The translations under genes and the position numbers were made by a program. Below are positions 5,218 to 17,600 of a DNA stretch of 64,000 bases, piece by piece. The stretch covers positions 1-64,000 of the IMG/VR virus record IMGVR_UViG_3300037042_002125. One strand, written 5' to 3'. The notes beneath the pieces are model-generated. The model was not told the DNA's origin. It worked only from the letters and a program-made list of their open reading frames with translations, and did not search any database. Each line of letters opens with the position of its first letter. Within the stretch, counting starts at the first letter, position 1.

Positions 5218-5466
5218 ATGCACCCTTTTCTAGATGCAAGTAAATTAACGGACGAAGAAATAATTGAACGATTAGGTCGAGCATATACATATATGAACGC
5301 TCAAGTAATGTTAGGACATAATCCTACTGTTCATAGTATCAAAGAAGTAATACAGACATTAGAGGATGTTCGTTTAGAGAGGCAACAAAAGAGTTCAGAA
5401 GATGAATTTAATAAGAAGTATCCTGATAAAAATAAGCCACTCGAATTAGGAAAATTAGATGATTAA
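5218..5466 (+). CDS. hypothetical protein
   Basis: ATAAATA box and GAG-rich RBS upstream. Confidence 0.75.
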   Translation: MHPFLDASKLTDEEIIERLGRAYTYMNAQVMLGHNPTVHSIKEVIQTLEDVRLERQQKSSEDEFNKKYPDKNKPLELGKLDD

Positions 5467-6172
5467 AAAAGGACGCCATCTTATCAAAAGTCATATGACG
5501 TTGGAATATGACTTTACAGGTATTAGGATACGAGATAGTGATCTAATACCCGTAGACTGGAAATTAACTATTGATCTTGTTGCTACCGGAAAAAAAGGTA
5601 AGGCAAAAGAACTCGTAGAATATGACGCAAGCATAACGTATCAAAAGATTTATTTTTGGTTAGATACGAATTTACCAAATATCGTAGTAGTGAATGTAAA
5701 TAATGAAGACGATCTGTATATTGCTAATTTATCGAGCAATATAATGATGTATTGCCCAGATACACCTAACGACGATATGCTTATACAGTTGTTACATTCT
5801 AAGATATCGGCATTAGCATTTCCTAATTTAATGGTGGGAGAGATACATTTAAAAGCAAGTGATACAGCACTCCAATATACATACGATTGCACAGACGGTA
5901 ATTATATACTTCCTATGACAACATCTGAGTATTATGCAGAAGGTACTACTCGCGATAAGATACCTTGGTGGATAAGAGATGACGGATTTTGTTTCGAATT
6001 TGTTAAGCCTCTTGATAATAAATTGACAGACGAAGAACTATTCAAGGATATAGTTGATCCAATGAGCGAGTTTCATCGTATTGTGACAGAAGTAGCAGAA
6101 ATACCTATGAGCATACTAAATGAGCCTGCCAGAATTGTACAGATAGAAAAATGGAAACCAAAGAAAGTTTAA
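5459..6172 (+). CDS. hypothetical phage protein
   Basis: 237-aa ORF overlapping neighbours. Confidence 0.75.
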   Translation: MIKKGRHLIKSHMTLEYDFTGIRIRDSDLIPVDWKLTIDLVATGKKGKAKELVEYDASITYQKIYFWLDTNLPNIVVVNVNNEDDLYIANLSSNIMMYCPDTPNDDMLIQLLHSKISALAFPNLMVGEIHLKASDTALQYTYDCTDGNYILPMTTSEYYAEGTTRDKIPWWIRDDGFCFEFVKPLDNKLTDEELFKDIVDPMSEFHRIVTEVAEIPMSILNEPARIVQIEKWKPKKV

Positions 6173-6684
6173 GAACTAATCTATATGGACAAGCCATACT
6201 CTCTGATACTGACCTCAGAGAGTTGCTACTCCAGGGAAAGAATATAAGTCATTTAAATGTTATATTCAATGAAGAGGTAGATTTATTCAAACAGTATCAA
6301 TCAATGTTACTGCCCGAAACTATTACATTTTTAGATGCCCCTGAGGAGAAGTTAACATTTGATGAGTTCCATCACAAATGTGCAGACGAATGGATATTTC
6401 CAATTATCTATCAGCAAATAGATGTACGTGCGTGGTTATATGATAAATGTACGACACAAGAAGAAATAAATAGAGTAGACGAAGAGTATCTACTTTACGA
6501 GGAACGAGAATTGATTATGCTACTAAGACTATTCATCTTTCTCATTGATTATATGAGAAAGAATAAATTTGTTTGGGGTGTTGGCAGAGGTAGTTCTACT
6601 AGTTCTTATATATTATATTTGATAGGTACACATCGTATTAATTCGATAAAATATAATTTAGATATAAGAGATTTTTTAAAATAG
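6151..6684 (+). CDS. short DnaE (DNA polymerase III alpha)-like fragment
   Basis: R..EE..L...GVGRGSS.SS..LYLIG.H.I.SIKY.L...FL matches DnaE palm region; ends before the PDxD catalytic motif. Confidence 0.8.
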   Translation: METKESLRTNLYGQAILSDTDLRELLLQGKNISHLNVIFNEEVDLFKQYQSMLLPETITFLDAPEEKLTFDEFHHKCADEWIFPIIYQQIDVRAWLYDKCTTQEEINRVDEEYLLYEERELIMLLRLFIFLIDYMRKNKFVWGVGRGSSTSSYILYLIGTHRINSIKYNLDIRDFLK

Positions 6685-6702
6685 TTTTTATAAGGAAAAG
6701 AT

Positions 6703-7029
6703 ATGGCTCGACATGTATCATACAGAGGTGCGACAATAGATATGGAATCTCTAAGTCGCGAAAATGAAAAGATTCCTGCAATTGGTAATATGAAGGTTAA
6801 CGCAAGGGGCGACCAAATTAATCGCGGCGTAATAACAAAAACAGCAGATCAAATAGCAAGAGATAATCATCGCGTTCAAACTATTATTACAAATACGGGG
6901 TTAAAAGGTAAACAGCCTATTGTACCCGATATTCAAATGGAAGCACCTAAGGCGCCTAAAGCAGTTAAGACACCTAAAGTAGCATCTAAAGAAACCGAGT
7001 TACCTTCTGGTGATATTATAGTAGAATAA
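6703..7029 (+). CDS. hypothetical protein
   Basis: AAGGA RBS, 108 aa. Confidence 0.75.
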   Translation: MARHVSYRGATIDMESLSRENEKIPAIGNMKVNARGDQINRGVITKTADQIARDNHRVQTIITNTGLKGKQPIVPDIQMEAPKAPKAVKTPKVASKETELPSGDIIVE

Positions 7030-7030
7030 T

Positions 7031-7204
7031 ATGGACGGCGATATCGAGGGAAATGTGAATGGTGTGAAATACACCATAGGCAAGGCCGTCTTGGAACAAC
7101 TGAAATTGCATAATATTGATGCAGTAAAAGAAGTGGAAGAAGCATTAAATACATTAATTAAAGAAGAAAGGCCTACAGATGCAAATCAAAGCAATGCCCG
7201 GTAA
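7031..7204 (+). CDS. small hypothetical protein (57 aa, below ORF-track cutoff)
   Basis: Manual translation MDGDIEGNVNGVKYTIGKAVLEQLKL...; fills the gap before GroES. Confidence 0.55.
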   Translation: MDGDIEGNVNGVKYTIGKAVLEQLKLHNIDAVKEVEEALNTLIKEERPTDANQSNAR

Positions 7205-7523
7205 AGTACTGGTAACAGATTTAGAACGCGGTTCTAGACTTATAAATGGAATTATTATTCCAGATGATAATGGTAAGAGCGAAGGCATTCGCCCTCGCTG
7301 GGGCCGGGTATATTCGATTGGCGAAGGTATCGATGAAATTTCTGTTGGACAATGGATATTGGTCGAGAATGGTCGCTGGACTCGCATGTTAAAGATAAGA
7401 GAAGACGATGGCACCTATATACAGGTATGGGGTGTAGAATGGCCTAAGTCTGTTATGCTTGTATCGGACGAAGATCCTGATATGAATATATTTTCTGAAT
7501 TTACCACATCACACGCATTTTAG
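7179..7523 (+). CDS. groES: GroES-like co-chaperonin
   Basis: IKAMPGKVLV..GIIIPD..GRVYSIGEG..VGQWIL pattern of Cpn10. Confidence 0.8.
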   Translation: MQIKAMPGKVLVTDLERGSRLINGIIIPDDNGKSEGIRPRWGRVYSIGEGIDEISVGQWILVENGRWTRMLKIREDDGTYIQVWGVEWPKSVMLVSDEDPDMNIFSEFTTSHAF

Positions 7524-7543
7524 GCCTGCATTAGCCGAAAGTC

Positions 7544-7572
7544 TTGCATAGCATGCCTTACTATGCTATTAT
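7544..7572 (+). promoter_or_regulatory. sigma70-like promoter
   Basis: TTGCAT-17 bp-TATTAT with TG extension. Confidence 0.55.
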
Positions 7573-7593
7573 TTGTCAATTAAGAAAGAACAT

Positions 7594-8532
7594 ATGAAGA
7601 ATCTGTGGACAGAAGTATATAGACCCAAGACGATAGGAGACTATGTCTTCAAAGATCAAAAACAAAAGAAACAAATAGAGAAGTGGATAGAGAGTGGTGC
7701 ACTTCCACATATCTTGTTGTCAGGGTCTCCGGGTACGGGTAAATCAACCTTAGTGAAAGTTCTGTTAAATGAACTAGGCGTAGATCCTTTTGATGTATTA
7801 GAAGTAAACGCATCTAGGGATAACGGTGTAGATTTTATTAGAGATACTATTACTCGATTTTCTGAAACAATGGGTGTGGGAGATATAAAGTATATATTTC
7901 TAGATGAAGCAGACGGTCTTTCGGCGCCAGCACAGGGTATTTTGAGAGGCACATTAGAAAAGTATGCAGGATCTGTAAGATTCTTACTTACATGTAATCA
8001 TCCACACAAGATTATAGATGCGATTAAATCCAGATGTGAAATTGGTCGTATGCATATAGAGAAATTAGATACAAGCGAATTTTATATGCGATTGGTTAAT
8101 GTGCTGGATAAAGAAAACGTCGAAATTGACCCAGATGCATTAGAAGCTATAGTACAGAAGACATATCCCGACCTACGCCGCGGGATTAGCATGATTCAGG
8201 CTAATTCCTTCAATGGAAAGCTAAATTCTCCCGACGCAGACTCTGAGGTTGTATCCGATTACAAGACTGATATGGTAGTGTTATTCAAGGCAGGTAGATA
8301 TACAGATGCTCGTAAGCTGATATGCGAAAAAATCAGTAAAGACGAATATGATGATGTATATACATTCATGTATAAGAATTTAGAAATTTGGAGTGAAAAT
8401 GATATAGAACAGAGTAGACTGATTATTGCAATTAGAAATGGATTAATCAATCATACTATGTGTTCTGATATTGAATTAAATCTTAGTGCAACTTTATGTG
8501 AACTTGAAATGATTTCGAAAGGTATTTTATGA
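7594..8532 (+). CDS. sliding clamp loader (RFC small subunit / T4 gp44-like AAA+)
   Basis: WTEVYRP, GSPGTGKS Walker A, LDEAD Walker B, SRC motif; ATG 7594 preferred to TTG 7573. Confidence 0.93.
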   Translation: MKNLWTEVYRPKTIGDYVFKDQKQKKQIEKWIESGALPHILLSGSPGTGKSTLVKVLLNELGVDPFDVLEVNASRDNGVDFIRDTITRFSETMGVGDIKYIFLDEADGLSAPAQGILRGTLEKYAGSVRFLLTCNHPHKIIDAIKSRCEIGRMHIEKLDTSEFYMRLVNVLDKENVEIDPDALEAIVQKTYPDLRRGISMIQANSFNGKLNSPDADSEVVSDYKTDMVVLFKAGRYTDARKLICEKISKDEYDDVYTFMYKNLEIWSENDIEQSRLIIAIRNGLINHTMCSDIELNLSATLCELEMISKGIL

Positions 8533-8885
8533 GTAAAGAAAAAGTTTTTATCGTGTTATCTCACAAACATAATTTAAAGAAGGGTTCTAGAACAGAGTGG
8601 GAAGTTGCAGAATCTGTAGAATTTGTTAATCAGTTAAGAAATAAGCATATCACTATGTCTAGCGCAATCGGCGATTATCTTAATAGAAAGATGATAAGCG
8701 GCGAAAGTAAAGGAATGGGCGATTATGCAAAGTTCGAAGAATATGTATGGAAGAAGTATTCTAAGCAAATGACAGAACTCGAGACTGCCTATAATGCATT
8801 ACGTGTTCCAGAAATTGTCATACCCGAAACAATGATTACTGATTCTTTCGGTAACGTAAGACCACATACGGTATTTGATATATGA
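8529..8885 (+). CDS. hypothetical protein
   Basis: ATGA coupling. Confidence 0.75.
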   Translation: MSKEKVFIVLSHKHNLKKGSRTEWEVAESVEFVNQLRNKHITMSSAIGDYLNRKMISGESKGMGDYAKFEEYVWKKYSKQMTELETAYNALRVPEIVIPETMITDSFGNVRPHTVFDI

Positions 8886-9487
8886 TTAAAGAGAAGATTA
8901 TCTTAACAGATTGCGACGGAGTACTCTGCAACTGGAACGACGGTTTTAATAAGTTCATGGAAGATAAAGGTATGCCACAATTACCCAATACGGATGATCA
9001 ATATCTATTATCGAAAAGGCACAATATTACTTCTGCATATGCTACAGAACTCGTCAGGGAATTTAATGAAGGCCCGAGTATTGCTGATTTGGAACCATTT
9101 GCTGATTCCGTAGAATATGTAGCCCGACTCTCAGATAAAGGTTTTAGATTTATTGTTGTCACAAGTCTTAGTGATGCGCCACATGCCCATTATTATAGAT
9201 CAAAGAATCTGCACAGTATTTTCGGTAGTCATGTATTTAAAGAAATCAATTGTATTGAAATGGGTGCAAGCAAAGCGCATATTTTAAAAAATTGGCAAGA
9301 TACGGGATATTTCTGGATTGAAGATCACATGCGTCAGGCAGAGGCTGGATATGAAGCTGGCCTACAAACAGTATTAATTAGACATCCATATAACGCACAT
9401 TACACAACTGATTTATTTCCAACAGTAAGTTACGAAAGACCGTGGGAAGAAATATATAATATGGTATGTAAGGAGTATAATTTATAA
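8882..9487 (+). CDS. HAD-family phosphatase (5'(3')-deoxyribonucleotidase-like)
   Basis: DCDGV motif I, VVTS, K, IEDH. Confidence 0.85.
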   Translation: MIKEKIILTDCDGVLCNWNDGFNKFMEDKGMPQLPNTDDQYLLSKRHNITSAYATELVREFNEGPSIADLEPFADSVEYVARLSDKGFRFIVVTSLSDAPHAHYYRSKNLHSIFGSHVFKEINCIEMGASKAHILKNWQDTGYFWIEDHMRQAEAGYEAGLQTVLIRHPYNAHYTTDLFPTVSYERPWEEIYNMVCKEYNL

Positions 9488-10212
9488 TGCTTATAAACGT
9501 ATTTTCATTGCATCGCACTGGATCTACCTGGTGGGCACATTATATTAAAAATCAATACCCTGGTAGTAAAATATATAATGAAATATTTAATCAGCTATGG
9601 TATTTTACTATTAATGAGAACGGAAGTTTTACATGGCACAACGAATATAGCGACGGATGCTTCTGGAGAGCACCAAATGCTTCCTGCACAGAAATTGTGC
9701 ATAATTACAGAGAACTTGCAACCAAGGATAATCTTAGATTCGACAGATGGTTAAAATTCTTAGAATTATCTACAGATACAATTATTTGCCATACTCATCT
9801 TTCACCCCTACAAGATGATAAGTATCTTACAGAATTATGCAAGATAGGTAATAAGAACTATTATGTCTATAGAGAAAATATCTTAGAGAAAATAGCATCT
9901 TTCGTAATATTAGAACATACAGGTGAATATACAGTATTTACTAAAGATAGAGCTAATATTAATGTAAAATTTACATATCCTATTATTAACATGAAATCAA
10001 CAGAATGGAAGATATATGAAATATTACATGCTAATGAATTCATAGAAAATAAATTATTTAATTATGAAAGAATTAAATATGAATTTATGCCATTCAACGA
10101 AACAATAGAGGGAATGCCACTAAAACAAAATGTGTCAGCATTCGACAGATTGTGCATTATAGATCAAGAATTAATAAAACAAATATATACAAGGACAAAA
10201 AATGGCAGGTAA
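9487..10212 (+). CDS. sulfotransferase-like protein
   Basis: N-terminal HRTGSTW 5'-PSB loop, NEIF, YREN....AS 3'-PB-like motif, KYE. Confidence 0.65.
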   Translation: MLINVFSLHRTGSTWWAHYIKNQYPGSKIYNEIFNQLWYFTINENGSFTWHNEYSDGCFWRAPNASCTEIVHNYRELATKDNLRFDRWLKFLELSTDTIICHTHLSPLQDDKYLTELCKIGNKNYYVYRENILEKIASFVILEHTGEYTVFTKDRANINVKFTYPIINMKSTEWKIYEILHANEFIENKLFNYERIKYEFMPFNETIEGMPLKQNVSAFDRLCIIDQELIKQIYTRTKNGR

Positions 10213-11056
10213 AATTTTAATAATGGGCCTACCAGGGTCTGGCAAAACAACACTCGCAATAGCACTTAAGAAGTATTTAGAAGATAATGGTACCGCAAAC
10301 AACATGTCATTATCTAATGCGATGACTACTGACATGCTTATCGGTGATTATAAGGTCACCGTTGACTGGTTCAACGCTGATGAAATTCGTAAACGCTTCA
10401 ACGACTGGGACTTCAGCCAAGACGGCCGTATCAGACAATCGCTACGCATGGCAGAGTTCGCCCTGAAATCATCAGGTGATTTTGTTATCGCTGACTTTGT
10501 TGCACCGCTAGTGGAGATGCGAAATAACTTTAAGGCAGACTGGACTATCTGGATGGATACTATCGATCAAGGTCGTTTCGATGATACAAACAAAGCATTC
10601 GTACCACCCACTATATATGACTTCCGTGTCACTGAACAGAACGCAGACAAGTGGGCCGAGTTTATTGGTACACATATTCTTGAAAATCGGCGCCGCCCAG
10701 TGTTTAATTGGCAAAAAGAAACTGTTATGCTACTAGGAAGATATCAGCCTTGGCATCAAGGGCATAGGGCATTATTTGATATTGCTATTGCTAAAACAGG
10801 GCAGGTAATTGTACAGATACGAGATTGTCAGGGTTGGAACGGTAGCAATCCTTTTACTCTTAAACAAGTGGCAGACTATATTAGACGAGATCTCGACCCC
10901 TTATATCAGGGCCAGTATGAAATACAAATTGTGCCCAACATTGTTGAAATTAATTATGGACGCGACGTGGGCTATAAAATAAACAAAATAGATCTTCCAG
11001 ATGAGATACAACAAATATCTGCTACTAAAATTCGTAAGGATATGGGTATAGAATAA
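10202..11056 (+). CDS. cysC: adenylyl-sulfate kinase-like P-loop domain fused to HxGH nucleotidyltransferase domain
   Basis: GLPGSGKT, NADEIR, DFVAP, F..P; C-terminal GRYQPWHQGH and ISATKIR. Confidence 0.8.
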   Translation: MAGKILIMGLPGSGKTTLAIALKKYLEDNGTANNMSLSNAMTTDMLIGDYKVTVDWFNADEIRKRFNDWDFSQDGRIRQSLRMAEFALKSSGDFVIADFVAPLVEMRNNFKADWTIWMDTIDQGRFDDTNKAFVPPTIYDFRVTEQNADKWAEFIGTHILENRRRPVFNWQKETVMLLGRYQPWHQGHRALFDIAIAKTGQVIVQIRDCQGWNGSNPFTLKQVADYIRRDLDPLYQGQYEIQIVPNIVEINYGRDVGYKINKIDLPDEIQQISATKIRKDMGIE

Positions 11057-11104
11057 AATTGTTGGGACGATGGCACAATGATAAATACATTAAGGGAGAA
11101 ATGT

Positions 11105-11245
11105 ATGGACTCATTTGTATATCAATGGACTAATTTAACATTAGATAAAATTTATATAGGATTTCATAAAGGGACAGAAGGTGATGGATACATTTGTTCA
11201 TCGGCATCTTCTATCTTCTGGGAAGATTTTCGTAATCCCAGTAGC
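11105..11245 (+). pseudogene. truncated GIY-YIG (Seg-like) endonuclease N-terminus
   Basis: FVYQWTN...KIYIGFHKG...DGYICSS then runs into the microsatellite (PSS x7). Confidence 0.7.
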
Positions 11246-11299
11246 CCCAGTAGCCCCAGTAGCCCCAGTAGCCCCAGTAGCCCCAGTAGCCCCAGTAGC
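11237..11299. repeat. 7 x CCCAGTAGC tandem repeat at the compositional junction
   Basis: Direct count; minus strand encodes (GAT)n collagen triplets. Confidence 0.97.
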
Positions 11300-11353
11300 C
11301 CCATCAATCCCTGCTGGCGCAGCATTGATGATTGTGTTTAGGTTTTTGGACAT
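11237..11353 (-). pseudogene. truncated 5' end of a collagen-like gene ([23 protein letters not shown]...)
   Basis: ATG at 11353 just after the previous stop; frame stops about 12 codons past the repeat, in AT-rich DNA. Confidence 0.7.
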
Positions 11354-11356
11354 GGT

Positions 11357-11731
11357 TTATTCCGGGTTTGCGGGTAATTCCACCCAAGATACTGTTGATT
11401 CATCCCATTGATATTGTTTGCCGTCCTCTGGGTAGGAGGCTGGAGGCTCCCACAAACACGATTCTTCGTTAAGCAGCCATGAGTCAAACGGTTTTGGAGC
11501 TATGAACGCATCACGGACGGCATCGTAGGTATATCCGACACCAGCGTAGTTCTTTCGGAAGTTTCCGTTGTAGCTTGTCTGTTTCCAGTTGGAATATCCA
11601 CCCGACCAATTTGTCAGGAACTCAATTCCCTTGGCCTCAGACTCAACTCCGTTGTCGAGTAATTCGTTGTTGTTCAAACAATTAACATCAACGACGATAT
11701 TGTTCGCGTCGAGTTTTGCAAAATGTGCCAT
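11357..11731 (-). CDS. tail-fibre-associated small protein
   Basis: MAHFAKLD..WKQTSYN.NFRKNYAG.GYTYD..RDAFI.PKPF.SW type usually found after Gly-rich fibre genes. Confidence 0.7.
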   Translation of the reverse strand: MAHFAKLDANNIVVDVNCLNNNELLDNGVESEAKGIEFLTNWSGGYSNWKQTSYNGNFRKNYAGVGYTYDAVRDAFIAPKPFDSWLLNEESCLWEPPASYPEDGKQYQWDESTVSWVELPANPE

Positions 11732-11739
11732 GTTGATTC

Positions 11740-14562
11740 CTAGAAAGTAATGGAGCCGTTGCCGGTCCATGTATAGATGCGATAACCACCTGATACGGTT
11801 ACCGTGGGGGAGCCTGTGGTTGCAGATGCGGCTGCATAACTGTCTGCATAACGGATGACTACTACGCCAGAACCCCCGGTTCCCCCTGTTCCTCCATTAT
11901 TAGCGCCGCCCCCACCACCACCGGTATTTGTTGTGCCGGAATATCCGTTGGCGCTTGACGAGACTGCCCCACCATTACCGCCACCACCTAACCCCCCAGT
12001 TCCCGGAGTTCCTGATGCGTAGCAGGTTCCGGCGCCGCCACCTGCATAATAAGTTGCAGTTCCAGATATAGAGGATTGTAATCCAACTCCGCCATTTCCG
12101 CCTTGTCCTGTTGATGCATTACCTCCAACAGCACCGGCGCCGCCGCCGCCACCTGATGGATATGGATTTGTACTTGCACTAGTTCCCCCGGTATTTCCTT
12201 GCCCCGATGTTCCAGCGCCGCCTGCATTAACGCCCCATGATGATCCGCCACCACCAGAACCGCCAGGTTGACCAACTCCCCCATTGCCAGTACCACCCCG
12301 GCCACCACCAATTGCAGTAATATCTGCCCAATTATTTGCACCGTCTGTAGTATCAGTCAAAATAGTTGCTGTTTGCGTGTCATTTGTACTATCTTTGTTA
12401 TAGTATAAAAATACTTTGTAACTAGTTCCCCCAGTTAATGAGACAGTTTCTGAATATATTACAGTATCACTAGTATCAGTGATAGAGAATACAATTGATG
12501 CTCCTGTTTTAGTTGCCCTAAGTCTAAATGGTGTGCTAGCGGCTAAACCTGCATAGGCGTAATTAATTAATTTTCTGGCTAATGCCGTGCCATACGCTGC
12601 ATATTGTGCATATTCTACCGCCTGTGTAAATGTATTGGCATTAGTGTTATTAAGACCAATACCTAGATATCCAGCATTAGTGGGGCGTGTTCCTGAAATT
12701 TGAACTTTGAAATCAAAGTTGGCACTAGCAGAAGTAAATATATCCGACACTACATAATTATTTGGAGATGGAGCATTAACTAACGTTAACGGAGGATGAG
12801 CTATTCCTAATGAAGAATTACTTCCATTGTTTGCCACGGTTGTAGACGAATTACCAGCACCTCCGGCTCCTATAGTAATTCTATAACCAATACCAGCAGT
12901 AACAGCAGTAGTAGTAAAATATCCACCCGCACCACCACCCCCTGATGGTTCTGCATAACCACCAGAACTGCCCCCACCTCCCGCCACGATAAGGCATTCA
13001 ACAGCAGGAGGACGCTCAACAGCTGCAACCGTCCAAGTAAATGTCCGGGTGGCAGTCTTGTTGGTAGTCGCAGTAGCAGCCGTGATGACGCTTGCTCCGC
13101 TGCTGATTGTCGTGGGTGCCCCGGTGATCTGATCGCCGCTGATGCTCACCCCCGCAGGAAGGGTGTCGGCTGAGTACGAAATCGTCCCTCCCGTTGCCGA
13201 AGCTGCAACCAGCGTGATCGCGCTCATGGCCGTGCTTTGCCCCAGTAAATAGGCGGTGCCATCAGCAGGGCTTGTCCAAGTCACCACATCGGGATTGACG
13301 GTGATTGAGAAACTGCGGTTTGTGGTCTGGTTCTGTGCGTCAACGGCCTTGATGACAAAGCTGTAGGTTGTCGAGCTTGCAGTTACAGCGTTGGTCCCGC
13401 TTATCAGGCCGGTGGAACTGTTCAGTGTGATGTTGGTTGGTAGAGAACCCGAAACGACCGAATAGGTTACTGGCGCATCACCTGTGGCAGCAAGCGTTGT
13501 GGATACCGCACCAGTCTCATAGGACGCTCCAAGGGTTCCAGCTGCCGTTGTCCAAGCGGGTATACCGCTGTACGAGATACCCGGAACTGCGATGGCCGTT
13601 GCACCGTCTGTATTGACAAGGTAGACCGGGTACGTTCCAGCGGCCACGGCTGGTGCAGTGAAGGTGATCGAGGTTGAGCTGACTACCGCCACCACGGATA
13701 CTGTGGTGAAAGGCGAGGTTCCAATCAGAAGTGAAGCCCCTGCTGCAAAGCCAGTGCCGACCAAGGTGACAGTCTCTCCACCAGCCACGTCTACGGCTGT
13801 CTCCGAACTGGGGTAGGTGATTCCCGTGATTTTGGGTACGTCTGCTCCTGCACCCGTAGCTCCAGTCGGGCCAGTAGGACCACCTGGAGTACCAGCGGCT
13901 CCAGTAGCACCAGTCAAACCCACCGTAGGCGTCTCGGCCACCTTCCAGTTGGATGTAGCGCCGATATAAACCAGCGGCACAAAGGCACCGTTGATGTTGA
14001 TGTTCAATCCAGTGCTTTCCCCCTCCACCGAACTTGCTCCAACCACCAGCACGTTATGAACCGCGCATTGGTTGGCAACGTCAAGGATTGAGATAAGAGC
14101 GCCGTCCACGCCTATAGGAAGGGTGATCGTGAATCCCCCAGCGGTTGAGTCCACCCGCACCAGATCGTTTGCCGCAGCCGTGTAGTTGGCCGTCTTGACT
14201 GCGGTTGGTGTGAGGCCGGAGCCACTTCCACCACTGCCAGCAGGGCCAGTTAAGCCGGTTGCACCTGTGGGACCTGTTACCGTAGAAGCAGCACCACCGG
14301 GTCCTGTCCAACCTGTGGGTCCTGTGACTGTGCTGGCTGCCCCGTTAGGACCTGTCCAGCCTGTGGGACCTGTTACCGTAGAAGCAGCACCACCGGGTCC
14401 TGTCCAACCTGTGGGTCCTGTGACTGTGCTGGCTGCTCCAGTGGGGCCTGTGACTGTGGAGGCTGCCCCGTTAGGACCTGTCCATCCAGTGGGACCTGTA
14501 ACCGACGGCCTGCCGTAGGTCGAAATTGCCCCAAGTCGTAAACCCGTTAAGGTTATTGCCAT
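11740..14562 (-). CDS. tail fibre/spike-like protein: collagen repeats, IPT/TIG and Ig-like domains, Gly-rich C-terminal domain
   Basis: GPT/GWT triplets, [27 protein letters not shown]...[10 protein letters not shown]. Confidence 0.8.
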
Positions 14563-14613
14563 GTTAGTTCCTTGAGCGTTAAAGTTAGAGTTACTGTTAT
14601 ACTACGGTACTAA

Positions 14614-17600
14614 TTACGGTATGAAGCGTTCTTCTAGATCGTGCAATCTTGCTTCCTGATCTTTTGCTATCTCGATCAAGAATGCCAGCAGAGGCAAGTA
14701 CGACACGGACTTCATGCCGTTTGCGTCATCCTTAACAAGCTCTGGCAATATCTTTTCAAGCTCTTGGGCGATCAAACCGTATGACTTATCCCCTGACTCT
14801 TTCCACGTAAAGGACACACCCATAAGACGTTTGATTGTCTCAATAGGATTCTGGAGCAACCGAATGTTTTCCTTATACCTTATGTCTGACGTCGTGTTCA
14901 GTATAGTTGAGTTGAGCGTGCCTGTTGATGGGTCAAACGTCAACTTGGTGCTAGACACATACGTATCTGCTTGAGTACCTGATGTTGCGCGCGTCATCCC
15001 AACGTACTGCGTAACCACAGTCGTTGTGTCGTTCGTGATCGTTACTGAGGTGCCTGCAGGACCCGTAACCGACGGCCCTGTCCAACCAGTGGGGCCTGTG
15101 ACTGTGCTGGCCGCTCCCTCAGGACCTGTCCAACCTGTGGGTCCTGTAACCGACGGCCCTGTCCAACCAGTGGGGCCTGTGACTGTGCTGGCCGCTCCCT
15201 CAGGACCTGTCCAACCTGTCGGTCCAGTAGGCCCTGTGACGGTCGATGCTGCCCCGTTGGGACCTGTCCAACCTGTGGGTCCAGTAACCGTAGAAGCAGC
15301 ACCACCGGGTCCTGTCCAACCTGTGGGTCCTGTGACGGTCGAGGCAGCACCGTTAGGTCCTGTCCAACCTGTGGGACCTGTTACCGACGGCCCTGTCCAA
15401 CCTGTAGGTCCAGTTACCGTAGAAGCCGCCCCTGTAGCGCCAGTAGGACCTGTGGGTCCTGTTACCGTAGACGCAGCCCCGTTAGGTCCAGTCCAACCTG
15501 TGGGTCCTGTGACTGTGCTGGCCGCTCCCCCGGGACCTGTCCAACCTGTGGGTCCAGTGACGGTCGAGGCTGCGCCTGTGGGTCCTGTTACCGACGGCCC
15601 AGTCCAGCCTGTAGGACCTGTAGGACCTGTGACGGATGGACCTGTCCAACCTGTAGGTCCTGTTACCGTAGAAGCAGCACCGTTAGGTCCTGTCCAACCT
15701 GTGGGACCTGTTACAGTAGACGCTGCGCCTGTGGGTCCTGTGACTGTCGATGCAGCGCCTGTAGCACCAGTGGGACCTGTGACTGTTGAGGCTGCACCAC
15801 CAGGCCCTGTCCATCCAGTGGGTCCAGTAACCGAAGGCCCTGTCCATCCAGTGGGGCCAGTTACGGATGGGCCAGTTACGGATGGGCCAGTAGGTCCTGT
15901 AATAGATACTATAGGTGTCTCAGCTACCTTCCAGTTTGTGCCGGTGCTGTTGTATACCAATACAACGTAAGCACCGCTGACGTTTGCAGACAGGCCAACT
16001 GCATCACCTTCAATGGTTTTGCCACCAGCAACCGCAATAAGCACTGGGTTCAAGCTACATTGGTTCGCAACGTCAAACAGACCAGCTCTATCACCATCTG
16101 AAGGAGAGGCTGGCAGTGTGATAGTAAACTCACCACCTGTACTATCTACTCGCACAACCTCATTCAATCCTACTGAATAAGCAGATGTCTTGATTGGAGT
16201 ATAGTTTACTTCGTAAGGACCTGTAGGGCCAGTAACTGAGGGACCTGTTGGTCCAGCAACGGTACTATCAGCTCCTGTTGGGCCAGTCAACGATGCTCCT
16301 GTTGGGCCAGTCAACGATGCTCCTGTTGGACCTGTGACAGAGGGGCCAGTCCAGCCAGTGGGACCTGTTACCGACGGACCTGTCCAACCTGTAGGTCCTG
16401 TGACTGTCGAGGCTGCCCCTGTAGCGCCAGTAGGACCAGCAACTAAGGCCACATTGTTGACGTAGAGACCAGAATTGTCTACCCTAATCCGCTCGCAGGT
16501 TCCAGCACCAAGCAACAGGGTACAGACGCAGCCAGCAGCACCGACCAAGGAGCCGATCACAGTGTTGTTAACACCTGTAGTAATCGCGTTACCCGCGTTA
16601 GCACCAATCGCTATGTTGTTACCTGTGGCGTTTGATGCGTACAAGGCGCAGCAACCGATACCGATATTATTATTACCTGTGGTGTTGCATGTTAGAGATT
16701 GAGATCCTTGAGCAATGTTGTTACAGCCTGTAGTATTACAGTAGAGCGCCGAGTATCCTTGGGCACTGTTGTTACAGCCTGTGGTGTTGGCGCATAACGC
16801 TGTGTTACCTTGAGCAATGTTGTTACAGCCTGTGGTGTTTTTCTTAAGCGCCATGTAGCCTACGGCCACGTTATTTGACCCAGCAGTGTTAGCTACTATG
16901 GCATTGTATCCAATAGCCGTGTTGTAGCATCCCGTGGTGTTACCGTATAGTGACCCATAGCCTAAGGCCACGTTACTCATGCCGTAAGTGTTAAACTTTA
17001 GAGCTTGTGATCCTATCGCCACATTAAAATGACCGGTAGTATTGCTACACAGAGTAAGACAGCCTGCCGCGAAATTGCGGCTACCTGTGGTATTCCCGTA
17101 CAGAGAACAGAAGCCGAAGGCGAAGTTACTGTAGCCAGTAGTTGTCTTGGCAAGAGCGCCTCGCCCAATTGCTACGTTATTCGAGCCATTGGTAATAGCA
17201 GCCAACGCACTAGCACCAACCCCAAAGTTATTGTAGGTGGCTGTGAGACTAGGATTACCAGTGAGTGCAACATTGTTGATGTAAAGGCCACTGTTATCAA
17301 CCCTTATACGTTCGCAGGTTCCAGCACCGAGGAGCAAGGTGCCTACACAACCTGCGGCTGCTGGTAGAGAACCAATAACAGTGTTATTGTTTCCAGTGGT
17401 TATGGCGCCACCCGCCCAGTAGCCTATGCCTATGTTACACGATCCAATCGTGTTCAGTCCGAGCGCGCAGTAGCCTTGGGCGATGTTATTGCAGCCTATT
17501 GTATTTTTGGCGAGACCGTAGGCTCCTATCGCAACGTTGTAGCTACCTGTGGTATTGCAACATAAGGCTATGAATCCGATGCTAGTATTGTATCCACCGA

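Follow-up and report, generated by a model that had tools for sequence, protein, structure and literature searches.

Sulfate is activated for transfer in two steps, the formation of APS by an ATP sulfurylase and its phosphorylation to PAPS by an APS kinase, and PAPS is then used by sulfotransferases. In the metazoan bifunctional PAPS synthases (PAPSS1/2) a single chain carries an N-terminal APS kinase and a C-terminal adenylyltransferase of the HxGH superfamily, the latter of about 390 aa. Rhizobia encode a private PAPS supply (NodP/NodQ) beside the sulfotransferase that it feeds (NodH) for sulfation of Nod factors; here, as in CysD/CysN-CysC, the adenylyltransferase (NodP/CysD) is a PP-loop enzyme that needs a GTPase partner. 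Other branches of the HxGH superfamily include the NadM/archaeal-type NMN adenylyltransferases (NMNATs), NadR, which joins an NMNAT to a P-loop kinase, and phosphopantetheine adenylyltransferase (PPAT, CoaD).

Here we examined a 64,000-nucleotide window (positions 1 to 64,000 of IMG/VR virus record IMGVR_UViG_3300037042_002125), in which a divergent sulfotransferase-like gene (ORF-X) lies next to an APS-kinase-like domain fused to a very small nucleotidyltransferase (the fusion). The initial annotation proposed three coupled genes, with a minimal one-protein PAPS synthase feeding a phage sulfotransferase that acts on virion glycans, the host surface or DNA, and speculated that an upstream HAD enzyme removes PAP. 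The features of the locus are:

8882..9487 (+), HAD phosphatase of the NT5C type, 201 aa, probably belonging to the replication and nucleotide block
9487..10212 (+), ORF-X, 241 aa, divergent PAPS-type sulfotransferase-fold protein (predicted) from a small, mostly viral family
9514..9528 (+), R10-T-G-S-T14 loop of ORF-X, candidate 5'-phosphosulfate-binding loop without a Walker A lysine
9790..9807 (+), H102-T-H104-L-S-P107 of ORF-X, at the end of a strand, candidate catalytic-base histidine
9871..9900 (+), R129...S138 of ORF-X, candidate 3'-phosphate-binding pair
10202..11056 (+), kinase-nucleotidyltransferase fusion, 284 aa, proposed one-chain PAPS synthase
10202..10711 (+), APS-kinase-like P-loop domain (residues 1 to about 170), including a 25-aa insert that distant relatives lack
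10226..10249 (+), Walker A motif GLPGSGKT (residues 9-16)
10715..11053 (+), minimal HxGH nucleotidyltransferase domain (residues 172-284), proposed non-canonical ATP sulfurylase
10754..10765 (+), H185-Q-G-H188 (HxGH), within GRYQPWHQGH (residues 179-188)
11015..11035 (+), I272-S-A-T-K-I-R278 (ISxTxxR)

The observation itself was confirmed: the three same-strand open reading frames are present at exactly these limits, with the HAD DxD in 'LTDCDGV', 'HRTGSTWW' at ORF-X residues 9-16, and the P-loop, HxGH and ISAT motifs where they had been placed. The junctions are tight (ATGA at 8882, TAATG at 9487 and an 11-nt overlap at 10202-10212). However, the two upstream clamp-loader genes overlap in the same way, so tight packing is a feature of the whole block and not of these three genes. 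The one part that did not hold is the grouping of the HAD with the other two genes.

Sequence and predicted structure of the proteins

ORF-X returned no Pfam, PHROG, NCBIfam or PDB sequence hit, and its family comprises only 17 clusters in 5.8 billion proteins and 68 representatives in 1.84 billion. Among 61 family members, going down to about 20% identity, only sub-threshold matches were found (Sulfotransfer_1 at 0.019 for two members, Stf0 at 0.078); NodH gave E 0.21, and hhalign against a phage Sulfotransfer_3 profile gave P of about 4e-4 to 9e-4. To ask whether the protein nevertheless has a sulfotransferase fold, an AF2 model (pLDDT 80) was compared with known structures. By VIA, sulfotransferases aligned over 168-182 residues across 1-240 with Z 7.1-8.2, while kinases aligned over about 140 residues with Z up to 8.9, so that in PDB the Z-scores tie. 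By ESM-Atlas shape search, sulfotransferase clusters gave TM 0.56-0.64 and kinases 0.45-0.46, and by ESM features every nearest named cluster was Stf0, Sulfotransfer_3 or Sulfotransfer_1.

Within these 61 sequences R10, G12, R129 and S138 are invariant, and S13 and H104 are at least 90% conserved. In the model the R10 loop lies between strand E2-7 and helix H13-23, H104 follows strand E99-103, and R129 and S138 sit at the end of E123-128 and inside H132-145, each at the expected secondary-structure position. The loop aligns weakly with 'ARSGSS' of NodH (E 0.21) and with 'PRSGST' of the phage Sulfotransfer_3 profile, and R129...S138 align with the R...S of both. The H104 segment may resemble the K-T-H-L-P motif of cytosolic sulfotransferases. 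The functional assignment of these residues is by analogy.

The fusion matches phrog_10255 (2.4e-46) and has at least 7814 related clusters. Its N-terminal domain matches Pfam APS_kinase (PF01583) at 1.2e-8, with 35.6 bits against a cut-off of 21.1, and in a profile search of PDB the kinase hits were almost all APS kinases (best 2yvu, 4.7e-9). NCBIfam equivalog cut-offs were not reached (28 bits against 139). G9, L10, P11, G12, G14, K15 and T16 of the Walker A motif are invariant in the alignment examined. Invariant D60, R63, F71 (in F71-S72), R76, F99 and P102 line up with the D-x-x-R, F-S, R and F-I-S-P positions of APS kinases, including 2pey and 2yvu, although the first Asp of D-G-D is Asn and the Ser of F-I-S-P is Ala. 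The Pfam match covers residues 5-111 and profile positions 5-93 of 152; the C-terminal half is divergent and appears shorter, and phosphorylation of APS is inferred.

The C-terminal domain is about 113 aa, as a kinase-only paralogue ends at about residue 170 of the fusion. Forty-one of its columns are invariant in 72 sequences, including S273, T275 and R278, and R180, Q182, P183, H185, G187 and H188 are invariant or at least 90% conserved. A profile search of PDB returned the NadM NMNATs 2qjt (7.1e-7) and MJ0541 (2.9e-4), limited to the first 57 residues or so of the domain, and a weak PPAT signal (3do8, E 0.25), but no ATP sulfurylase at E up to 10. NCBIfam cut-offs for NadM were not reached (26.5 bits against 181). 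Comparison of an AF2 model of only moderate confidence (pLDDT 78) by VIA gave Z 10.0 for PPAT over 110 residues, 9.2-9.5 for NMNATs, 7.8 for Thermus ATP sulfurylase over 115 residues and 6.1 for both human PAPSS1 and yeast ATP sulfurylase. By sequence and predicted fold the domain is therefore closer to NadM and PPAT than to canonical ATP sulfurylase, and the HxGH and ISAT motifs that it shares with the latter are generic to the superfamily. The QxRNP and GRD(H/M)AG sulfate/phosphate-binding motifs of ATP sulfurylase were not found: the domain has GRYQP of the NadM type, and hhalign against a Synechococcus Sat aligned only the VPN..GY..ISAT tail (P 0.012), without aligning GRDVGY of the domain with GRDMAG of Sat. 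The domain lacks roughly one beta-alpha unit of a normal HxGH enzyme, with three strands in the model where the NadM family has five.

Genomic context in phages and bacteria

To assess whether the fusion is linked to sulfation, its neighbourhoods were examined. The genome itself contains a second locus with a 79%-identical fusion paralogue, a stand-alone, kinase-only APS kinase (4.6e-15), DUF2061, two Sulfotransfer_3 genes, a carbamoyltransferase, GT9, GT1 and an FkbM methyltransferase. No ATP sulfurylase (PF01747, at E up to 1) and no CysD were found in the virus genome, and none of 27 fusion-bearing virus records has Sat or CysD. Sulfotransferases are the commonest neighbours of the fusion across 80 phage loci; Sulfotransfer_3 is represented by 37 proteins in 27 of 82 loci, at a median distance of 1.1 kb and always on the same strand. 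In 26 long contigs (3.2 Mb), 8 of 10 sulfotransferase genes lie within 5 kb of the fusion where about 0.9 would be expected by chance (binomial estimate about 1e-7). Conversely, only about a quarter of the fusion loci with full flanks (9 of 35) have a recognisable sulfotransferase within 5 kb. A recurring cassette runs methyltransferase, sulfotransferase(s), fusion, DUF2061, and DUF2061 lies directly downstream of the fusion in 6 of 9 strong hits. HAD, ORF-X and the fusion or an APS kinase stay in synteny down to 41% identity, and a related arrangement is seen in L044.

The HAD passes the Pfam NT5C cut-off (9.2e-7; 29.3 bits against 24.8), matches phrog_420 (1.6e-34) and has the DxD nucleophile motif ('DCDGV', residues 10-14). 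While it is adjacent to ORF-X and translationally coupled, it occurs in only 3 of 82 fusion loci, and in 1068 phage records against 15 for the fusion. Its homologues sit beside the clamp loader in PA5oct-like, phiM12-like, Atu_ph07 and Phosso phages (0.35 kb away in PA5oct-like and Phosso phages), none of which appears among the fusion's phage matches. A place for the HAD in the module, or a role as PAP phosphatase, is not supported; it is most likely an unrelated nucleotide phosphatase of the replication block.

In bacteria, one 555-aa Rhizobium ORF contains Sulfotransfer_2, APS_kinase and the nucleotidyltransferase, and sulfotransferases lie directly upstream of the fusion in Bradyrhizobium, Chelatococcus and another proteobacterial MAG. 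Three of the four alphaproteobacterial genomes tested also have CysD, so the unit is not always the only possible source of APS. A Pelagibacteraceae contig carries sulfite reductase, CysH, DUF2061, kinase and nucleotidyltransferase in a row, and no Sat or CysD was found in that partial genome; this cysI-cysH operon context was seen in one contig only. All 12 SAR86 genomes have 1-4 strong sulfotransferases and the kinase-nucleotidyltransferase pair, but no Sat and no CysD. In the 5 checked there is no true AprA and the only APS_kinase hit is this pair, whereas CoaE and separate CTP_transf_like ORFs, one of CoaD size, are present. The SAR86 and Pelagibacteraceae genomes are incomplete SAGs and MAGs. 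SAR86 is reported to lack sulfate-assimilation enzymes (Dupont 2012, PMC3358033). DUF2061 also sits in Mesorhizobium nodH/nodP/nodQ loci (preprint 10.1101/2022.04.26.489235).

A model for sulfate activation and its alternatives

Taken together, these results support, with moderate confidence, a model in which ORF-X and the fusion form a two-gene sulfation unit. In this view the C-terminal mini-domain adenylylates sulfate (ATP + sulfate gives APS + PPi), the N-terminal domain phosphorylates the 3'-OH of APS to give PAPS, which would pull the unfavourable first step forward, and ORF-X would transfer the sulfate to an acceptor. Because the second copy lies inside a glycan-modification island with two canonical sulfotransferases, a glycan on the virion or the host envelope is the most likely kind of target. 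The domain identities, the (model-based) fold classes and the gene-context associations are established by the analysis. APS formation by the mini-domain, sulfotransferase activity of ORF-X and the target are inferred without biochemical evidence, the first resting on fusion and operon logic and on the absence of Sat and CysD. The initial interpretation is thus partly supported.

The alternative that survives best, though unlikely, is that only the kinase domain works in sulfate activation, converting APS from the host's own ATP sulfurylase to PAPS, while the mini-domain is a regulatory, nucleotide-binding or oligomerisation module or an enzyme for another substrate. The domain is truncated and nearest to NMNAT and PPAT, three of the four alphaproteobacterial genomes keep CysD, and fungal ATP sulfurylases, which carry an inactive APS-kinase-like allosteric domain, provide a precedent for degenerate partner domains. 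However, all catalytic signature residues and many polar residues are invariant, no other source of APS was found in SAR86 or with the Pelagibacteraceae operon, and where the nucleotidyltransferase is a separate gene it always overlaps or adjoins the kinase gene.

It is also possible, but less likely still, that ORF-X is a degenerate P-loop kinase-fold protein with another function. The top PDB Z-scores belong to kinases such as PSTK and shikimate kinase (8.3-8.9), no sulfotransferase HMM reaches significance, and distant family members sit in unrelated bacterial contexts. Against this, ORF-X has no Walker A GK[ST], its conserved set is R-x-G-S, H and R...S, sulfotransferases cover 30-40 more residues than kinases and give higher TM in the Atlas, all named embedding neighbours are sulfotransferases, and adjacency to the PAPS-synthase-like gene is conserved.

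A NadR-like NAD salvage enzyme (nicotinamide-riboside kinase plus NMNAT, rebuilding NAD+ during infection) is very unlikely. The best matches of the C-terminal domain include NadM and NadR NMNATs and a NADAR gene sits beside the fusion in Xylella phage Bacata, but the kinase matches APS kinases (the RNK-type family AAA_28 scores only 0.035), about 50 residues of a normal NMNAT between the NPF and ISxT motifs are missing, the neighbours are sulfotransferases, DUF2061, CysH and CysI rather than NAD genes, and SAR86 already has other CTP_transf_like enzymes. A CoA-synthase-like enzyme, suggested by the PPAT match and by the 3'-OH kinase chemistry shared with dephospho-CoA kinase, is likewise very unlikely, since CoaE is not among the best 25 Pfam hits, SAR86 has a canonical CoaE and a PPAT-sized CTP_transf_like gene, and the context concerns sulfation. 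Equally improbable is a nucleotide-activated sugar pathway of all three genes (kinase, phosphatase, nucleotidyltransferase, as in HldE/GmhB, with ORF-X as a transferase or kinase for the product): despite weak GmhB-like and phosphoheptose-isomerase-PHROG hits of the HAD (0.053 and 0.0079) and glycosyltransferases, an epimerase and a carbamoyltransferase near fusion copies, the HAD travels with the clamp loader, the kinase is not of the sugar-kinase type, and neither the fusion with a sulfotransferase nor the operon with CysH and CysI is explained.

A broader reading, about as likely as not, is that the APS-kinase-like protein, the roughly 115-130-aa NadM-like mini-nucleotidyltransferase and often the small DUF2061 membrane protein form a third type of sulfate-activating system alongside Sat and CysDN, of which we found no description. 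The unit is widespread, occurring fused in phages and Alphaproteobacteria and as two overlapping genes in SAR86 and Pelagibacteraceae. In this reading it would be the only route to APS and PAPS in SAR86 and some Pelagibacteraceae, lineages described as unable to activate sulfate, although SAR86 genomes carry sulfotransferases and one Pelagibacteraceae contig carries an APS-reductase/sulfite-reductase operon, and phages of several families would have taken it up to drive their own sulfotransferases. If the mini-domain does make APS, it would be the smallest known ATP sulfurylase and an independent recruitment of the NMNAT/PPAT branch. It would account for how SAR86 supplies its sulfotransferases and call for a fresh look at claims that streamlined marine bacteria cannot activate sulfate. 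Thousands of phage genes now listed as 'cysC / adenylylsulfate kinase' auxiliary metabolic genes, or as 'kinase' and 'cytidyltransferase', would be re-read as a self-contained PAPS supply for phage-directed sulfation, a modification of virions or host envelopes that has hardly been studied. A 284-aa one-chain PAPS synthase would also be attractive for PAPS regeneration.

Comparison with known systems

The fusion shares with PAPSS1/2 its domain order, and the kinase domains are detectably homologous (2ofw and 2pey at about 1e-7), while its C-terminal domain lacks the PUA-like domain, fails the ATP-sulfurylase HMM and belongs to the NadM/PPAT-like branch. With NodP/NodQ and NodH it shares the logic of a dedicated activation unit beside a sulfotransferase, DUF2061 as a neighbour and, at the second locus, carbamoyl-, methyl- and glycosyltransferases as in nod clusters, but no CysD-type gene is found in the phages. 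With NadM and NadR it shares the GR[FYW]QPxHxGH and NPF motifs and the N-terminal half of the fold. However, a complete NadM domain is about 170 aa, the segment between the NPF and ISxT motifs, which is the NMN-binding part, is about 30 residues shorter than in MJ0541, and the fusion partner is an APS kinase rather than an RNK or the Nudix domain of Francisella NadM. CoaD is the best structural match, yet the sequence signal is weak and canonical CoaE and a CoaD-sized gene coexist with the pair in SAR86. Finally, ORF-X shares with Stf0, NodH and Sulfotransfer_3 proteins the predicted fold, the P-loop-like R-x-G-S-T loop, the R...S pair and a conserved histidine, while falling below every Pfam threshold.

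Three overlapping ORFs and their predicted domains

The region examined contains three co-directional ORFs, which overlap by 4, 1 and 11 nt and which were read without recourse to an alternative genetic code:

8882-9487, plus strand: HAD phosphatase, 201 aa
9487-10212, plus strand: ORF-X, 241 aa, a putative divergent sulfotransferase
10202-11056, plus strand: kinase-nucleotidyltransferase fusion, 284 aa

The arrangement described in the initial annotation was therefore confirmed in its coordinates. However, the ORFs follow an RFC-like clamp loader (7573-8532) and a small ORF (8529-8885) that are packed just as tightly, so the coupling is not special to this trio. The window is the first 64 kb of a 222,078-bp virus record estimated to be 93% complete. 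Megablast of the region against the phage collection gave no match, indicating that the genome has no near-identical relative there, and its closest clamp-loader relatives are PA5oct-like jumbo phages at 50% identity. A weak GroES-like ORF (Cpn10, 9.6e-4) lies upstream of the clamp loader at 7179-7523, and relatives of this phage (contig L009 and related contigs) encode eIF-1a-like, DnaJ, ClpB-like and PhoH proteins a few kb downstream of the fusion.

The N-terminal domain of the fusion is APS-kinase-like. Pfam APS_kinase scores 35.6 bits for residues 5-111, above its cut-off of 21.1, and a profile of the family searched against PDB returned, among kinases, almost only APS kinases (2yvu at 4.7e-9, Arabidopsis APK1, human PAPSS1/2, Penicillium and CysNC). 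The Walker A motif and residues D60, R63, F71, R76, F99 and P102 are invariant, and in the alignments they line up with the substrate-side motifs of APS kinases. The match covers only the first 93 of 152 profile positions, and the lid half is divergent.

The C-terminal domain (residues 172-284) carries GRYQPWHQGH and ISATKIR, and 41 columns are invariant in 72 sequences. By sequence it is nearest to NadM and archaeal NMNAT (2qjt 7.1e-7, MJ0541 2.9e-4), with no ATP sulfurylase hit at E up to 10. The AF2 model has a pLDDT of 78 and is thus of moderate confidence. Foldseek found PPAT, NadM, NadR and archaeal NMNAT, while VIA gave PPAT Z 10.0, NMNATs 9.2-9.5, NadR 8.3-8.4, Thermus ATP sulfurylase 7.8, and PAPSS1 and yeast ATPS 6.1. 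So the domain is a genuine but stripped-down HxGH nucleotidyltransferase, although structure alone does not name its substrate. PF01747 found nothing in the genome. To investigate whether GRDVGY of the domain corresponds to the GRDHAG motif of ATP sulfurylase, the domain was aligned with a real Sat sequence; the two motifs do not align.

ORF-X gave no Pfam, PHROG, NCBIfam or PDB sequence hit, and tblastn against phages gave no match. The family is small, with 17 clusters in 5.8 billion proteins and 68 representatives in 1.84 billion. Across 61 members going down to about 20% identity, R10, G12, R129 and S138 are invariant, and S13 and H104 are at least 90% conserved. In the AF2 model (pLDDT 80, again of moderate confidence) these residues sit in the strand-1/helix-1 loop, at a strand end, and at a strand end plus the following helix. 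This is the layout of the 5'-phosphosulfate loop, the catalytic histidine (the K-T-H-L-P motif) and the 3'-phosphate Arg/Ser pair of sulfotransferases, to which the ORF-X residues are assigned by analogy, and there is no Walker A lysine. One metagenomic member of the family (P0156, 428 aa) is fused at its C-terminus to an Asp/Arg beta-hydroxylase-like domain (PF05118, 3.7e-6).

Structural comparisons of ORF-X favoured sulfotransferases, though not uniformly. Foldseek against PDB gave low TM (0.3-0.4) with sulfotransferases and kinases mixed together. In PDB, sulfotransferases align over 168-182 residues spanning the whole model (Z 7.1-8.2), while kinases align over about 140 residues (Z up to 8.9). 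In the ESM Atlas shape search, sulfotransferase clusters gave TM 0.56-0.64 and kinases 0.45-0.46, and all named feature-space neighbours are Stf0, Sulfotransfer_3 or Sulfotransfer_1 clusters, mostly viral. Sequence-level signals are weak but consistent: NodH was matched at 0.21 with both motifs aligned, and a profile-profile comparison (hhalign) with a phage Sulfotransfer_3 profile gave only P of about 4e-4 to 9e-4. An hhalign comparison of the ORF-X family alignment with a single canonical sulfotransferase was uninformative (probability 0.2%). We consider it likely that ORF-X is a divergent sulfotransferase.

To assess whether the HAD gene belongs with the other two, its distribution was compared with that of the fusion. 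The protein passes the Pfam NT5C cut-off. Its homologues lie about 0.35 kb from the clamp loader in PA5oct-like and Phosso phages. Those phages, and the phiM12-like and Atu_ph07 phages that also carry it, are not among the 15 phage records that match the fusion. In Stenotrophomonas phage DLP6 the HAD and the fusion are 50 kb apart, and the HAD appears in only 3 of 82 fusion loci. It therefore probably belongs to a conserved clamp-loader/HAD block, next to which ORF-X and the fusion have been inserted. The order HAD, ORF-X, fusion is kept in close relatives, with a rearranged version in contig L044. The role in PAP removal that the initial annotation had raised as speculative was dropped on these co-occurrence grounds; it is not excluded, but nothing supports it.

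Downstream of the fusion, the short convergent gap contains a perfect 9-bp tandem repeat (CCCAGTAGC x 7.4) at 11237-11303. It lies inside an 87-aa ORF (11078-11341) that reads as (PSS)n and has no Pfam hit. From about 11,000 onward G+C jumps from about 0.35 (1-10 kb) to 0.43-0.57, where the genes switch to the minus strand. These encode Gly-rich, He_PIG/Gly_rich_2 structural proteins (11740-14562, 939 aa), with 48/96-bp collagen-like repeats at 14263-14481.

Gene neighbourhoods in the same genome and in other phages

A 79%-identical fusion paralogue lies outside the window at 207,731-208,570 of the virus record, within a second island (207,500-217,000, minus strand; equivalent to 5433-15300 of locus L007). 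Around it, on one strand, are DUF2061 (207547-207702), a kinase-only APS kinase (4.6e-15), a Sulfotransfer_3 gene (5.9e-14), a carbamoyltransferase, a GT9-like gene, an FkbM methyltransferase, a second Sulfotransfer_3 gene and a GT1 gene. The island lies between a family-A DNA polymerase gene and a tail-fibre gene with an S74 chaperone domain. This is a glycan-decoration island with its own sulfate-donor genes, similar in logic to nodPQ-nodH with nodU and nodS. Elsewhere in the record (107,803-108,201), a 198-aa ORF has a weak PAPS_reduct (PF01507) match, 36.5 bits summed over two stretches, and does not match the CysD model.

The fusion family is very large, with at least 7814 clusters. In 80 IMG/VR loci the commonest neighbour family is Sulfotransfer_3, with 37 proteins in 27 of 82 loci at a median distance of 1.1 kb and always on the same strand. 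In 26 long contigs totalling 3.2 Mb, 8 of 10 sulfotransferase genes lie within 5 kb of the fusion, where about 0.9 would be expected by chance (our binomial estimate is about 1e-7). Nevertheless, only about a quarter of fully flanked phage loci show a recognisable sulfotransferase nearby. None of 27 fusion-bearing virus records has Sat or CysD, an absence that rests on incomplete viral contigs.

A recurrent cassette reads RCC1 protein, methyltransferase, sulfotransferase(s), sometimes an extra kinase-like protein, fusion, DUF2061, then neck and terminase genes. The extra protein, of about 300-320 aa and directly upstream of the fusion in some phages (contigs L038:9449-10411, L034:59-1018 and L079:9500-10393), has an unknown N-domain of about 170 aa plus a kinase-like domain. 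In L038 and L034 its Walker A motif has lost its lysine (GLPGSSRSS), so it may be a degenerate or regulatory paralogue. In T4-like phage contigs, radical-SAM/SPASM, NifU and Fe-S assembly (IscA-like) genes, as well as RCC1-repeat proteins, recur within a few kb of the fusion (for example L091:7077-8369 and L049:11621-12305). In distant Salvovirus homologues (35-38% identity) the gene follows a NADAR gene and a weak Sulfotransfer_4-like ORF; in Xylella phage Bacata (L001:4978-6741; 35% identity) these are a NADAR-domain gene (9e-27) and a 192-aa ORF with a sub-threshold Sulfotransfer_4 match (9.3e-4).

The small DUF2061 membrane protein is a tight third partner of the kinase/NTase unit (for example L079:11084-11386, L049:7146-7379 and L154:8399-8614). 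It lies directly downstream of the fusion in 6 of 9 strong hits, sometimes sits between the kinase and NTase genes, and is also reported in Mesorhizobium nodH/nodP/nodQ loci. Sulfate entry or membrane anchoring are possibilities for its role.

Homologous units in bacterial genomes

Cellular homologues gave the most informative evidence, and a scan of genome contigs found the unit in three settings. In SAR86, dozens of SAGs and MAGs carry it on chromosomal contigs as two overlapping genes of 136 and 130 aa next to tyrS (L143:7998-8793 and many other SAR86 loci among L126-L178). All 12 SAR86 genomes examined, which are incomplete SAGs and MAGs, lack Sat and CysD, and all 12 have 1-4 strong, large Sulfotransfer_3 proteins (1e-40 to 1e-50). 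In the 5 examined further, a check for an AprAB route to APS found no true AprA, the only APS_kinase hit is this pair, and CoaE plus several other CTP_transf_like ORFs, one of CoaD size, are present separately. Dupont et al. 2012 (PMC3358033) had already noted that SAR86 lacks sulfate uptake and assimilation enzymes. No paper in the literature searched mentions both SAR86 and sulfotransferases.

In Alphaproteobacteria the unit is fused. In Rhizobium sp. BK376 (L104:7131-8798) a single 555-aa ORF contains Sulfotransfer_2, APS_kinase and the NTase, while in Bradyrhizobium, Chelatococcus and another MAG, Sulfotransfer_3 genes lie immediately upstream.

In Pelagibacteraceae, one chromosomal MAG contig (L158:411-3918) has the gene order sulfite reductase, CysH, DUF2061, kinase, NTase; it also carries RNase E/G, PBP1 and RF-2. 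This cysI-cysH operon is a single example, and no Sat or CysD was found in that partial genome. Its CysH has the CC...CxxC cysteines that mark APS reductases. If it is one, that operon specifically needs a source of APS.

A proposed compact PAPS synthase and its comparison with known systems

The best-supported reading of these results is that the fusion is a compact PAPS synthase. In this model the mini-NTase adenylylates sulfate, the fused kinase traps APS as PAPS, and sulfotransferases use the PAPS, these being ORF-X at this locus and the canonical ones at the second locus. The domain families, the folds, and the fusion, operon and neighbourhood associations are established by the analysis, whereas APS formation by the mini-domain, sulfate transfer by ORF-X and the nature of the acceptor are inferred, without experimental data; a glycan is favoured as the acceptor because of the second locus. 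The interpretation offered in the initial annotation, of a one-protein PAPS synthase feeding a phage sulfotransferase, is thus supported in part.

The main rival is that only the kinase matters and that APS comes from the host. The gene content of SAR86 and of the Pelagibacteraceae contig argues against it, but those genomes are incomplete SAGs and MAGs. CoA-synthase and NadR readings were checked against SAR86 gene content and dropped.

Searches for a prior description, covering phage sulfotransferases with APS kinase, SAR86 sulfotransferases, and fusions of APS kinase with a cytidylyltransferase, found nothing relevant in the searchable literature. The finding would be of high interest if confirmed by assay. 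Functionally the fusion resembles metazoan PAPSS and NodPQ/CysDNC. It is not a member of the ATP-sulfurylase family, since it neither matches the HMM nor carries the specific motifs, and it is not a complete NMNAT either.
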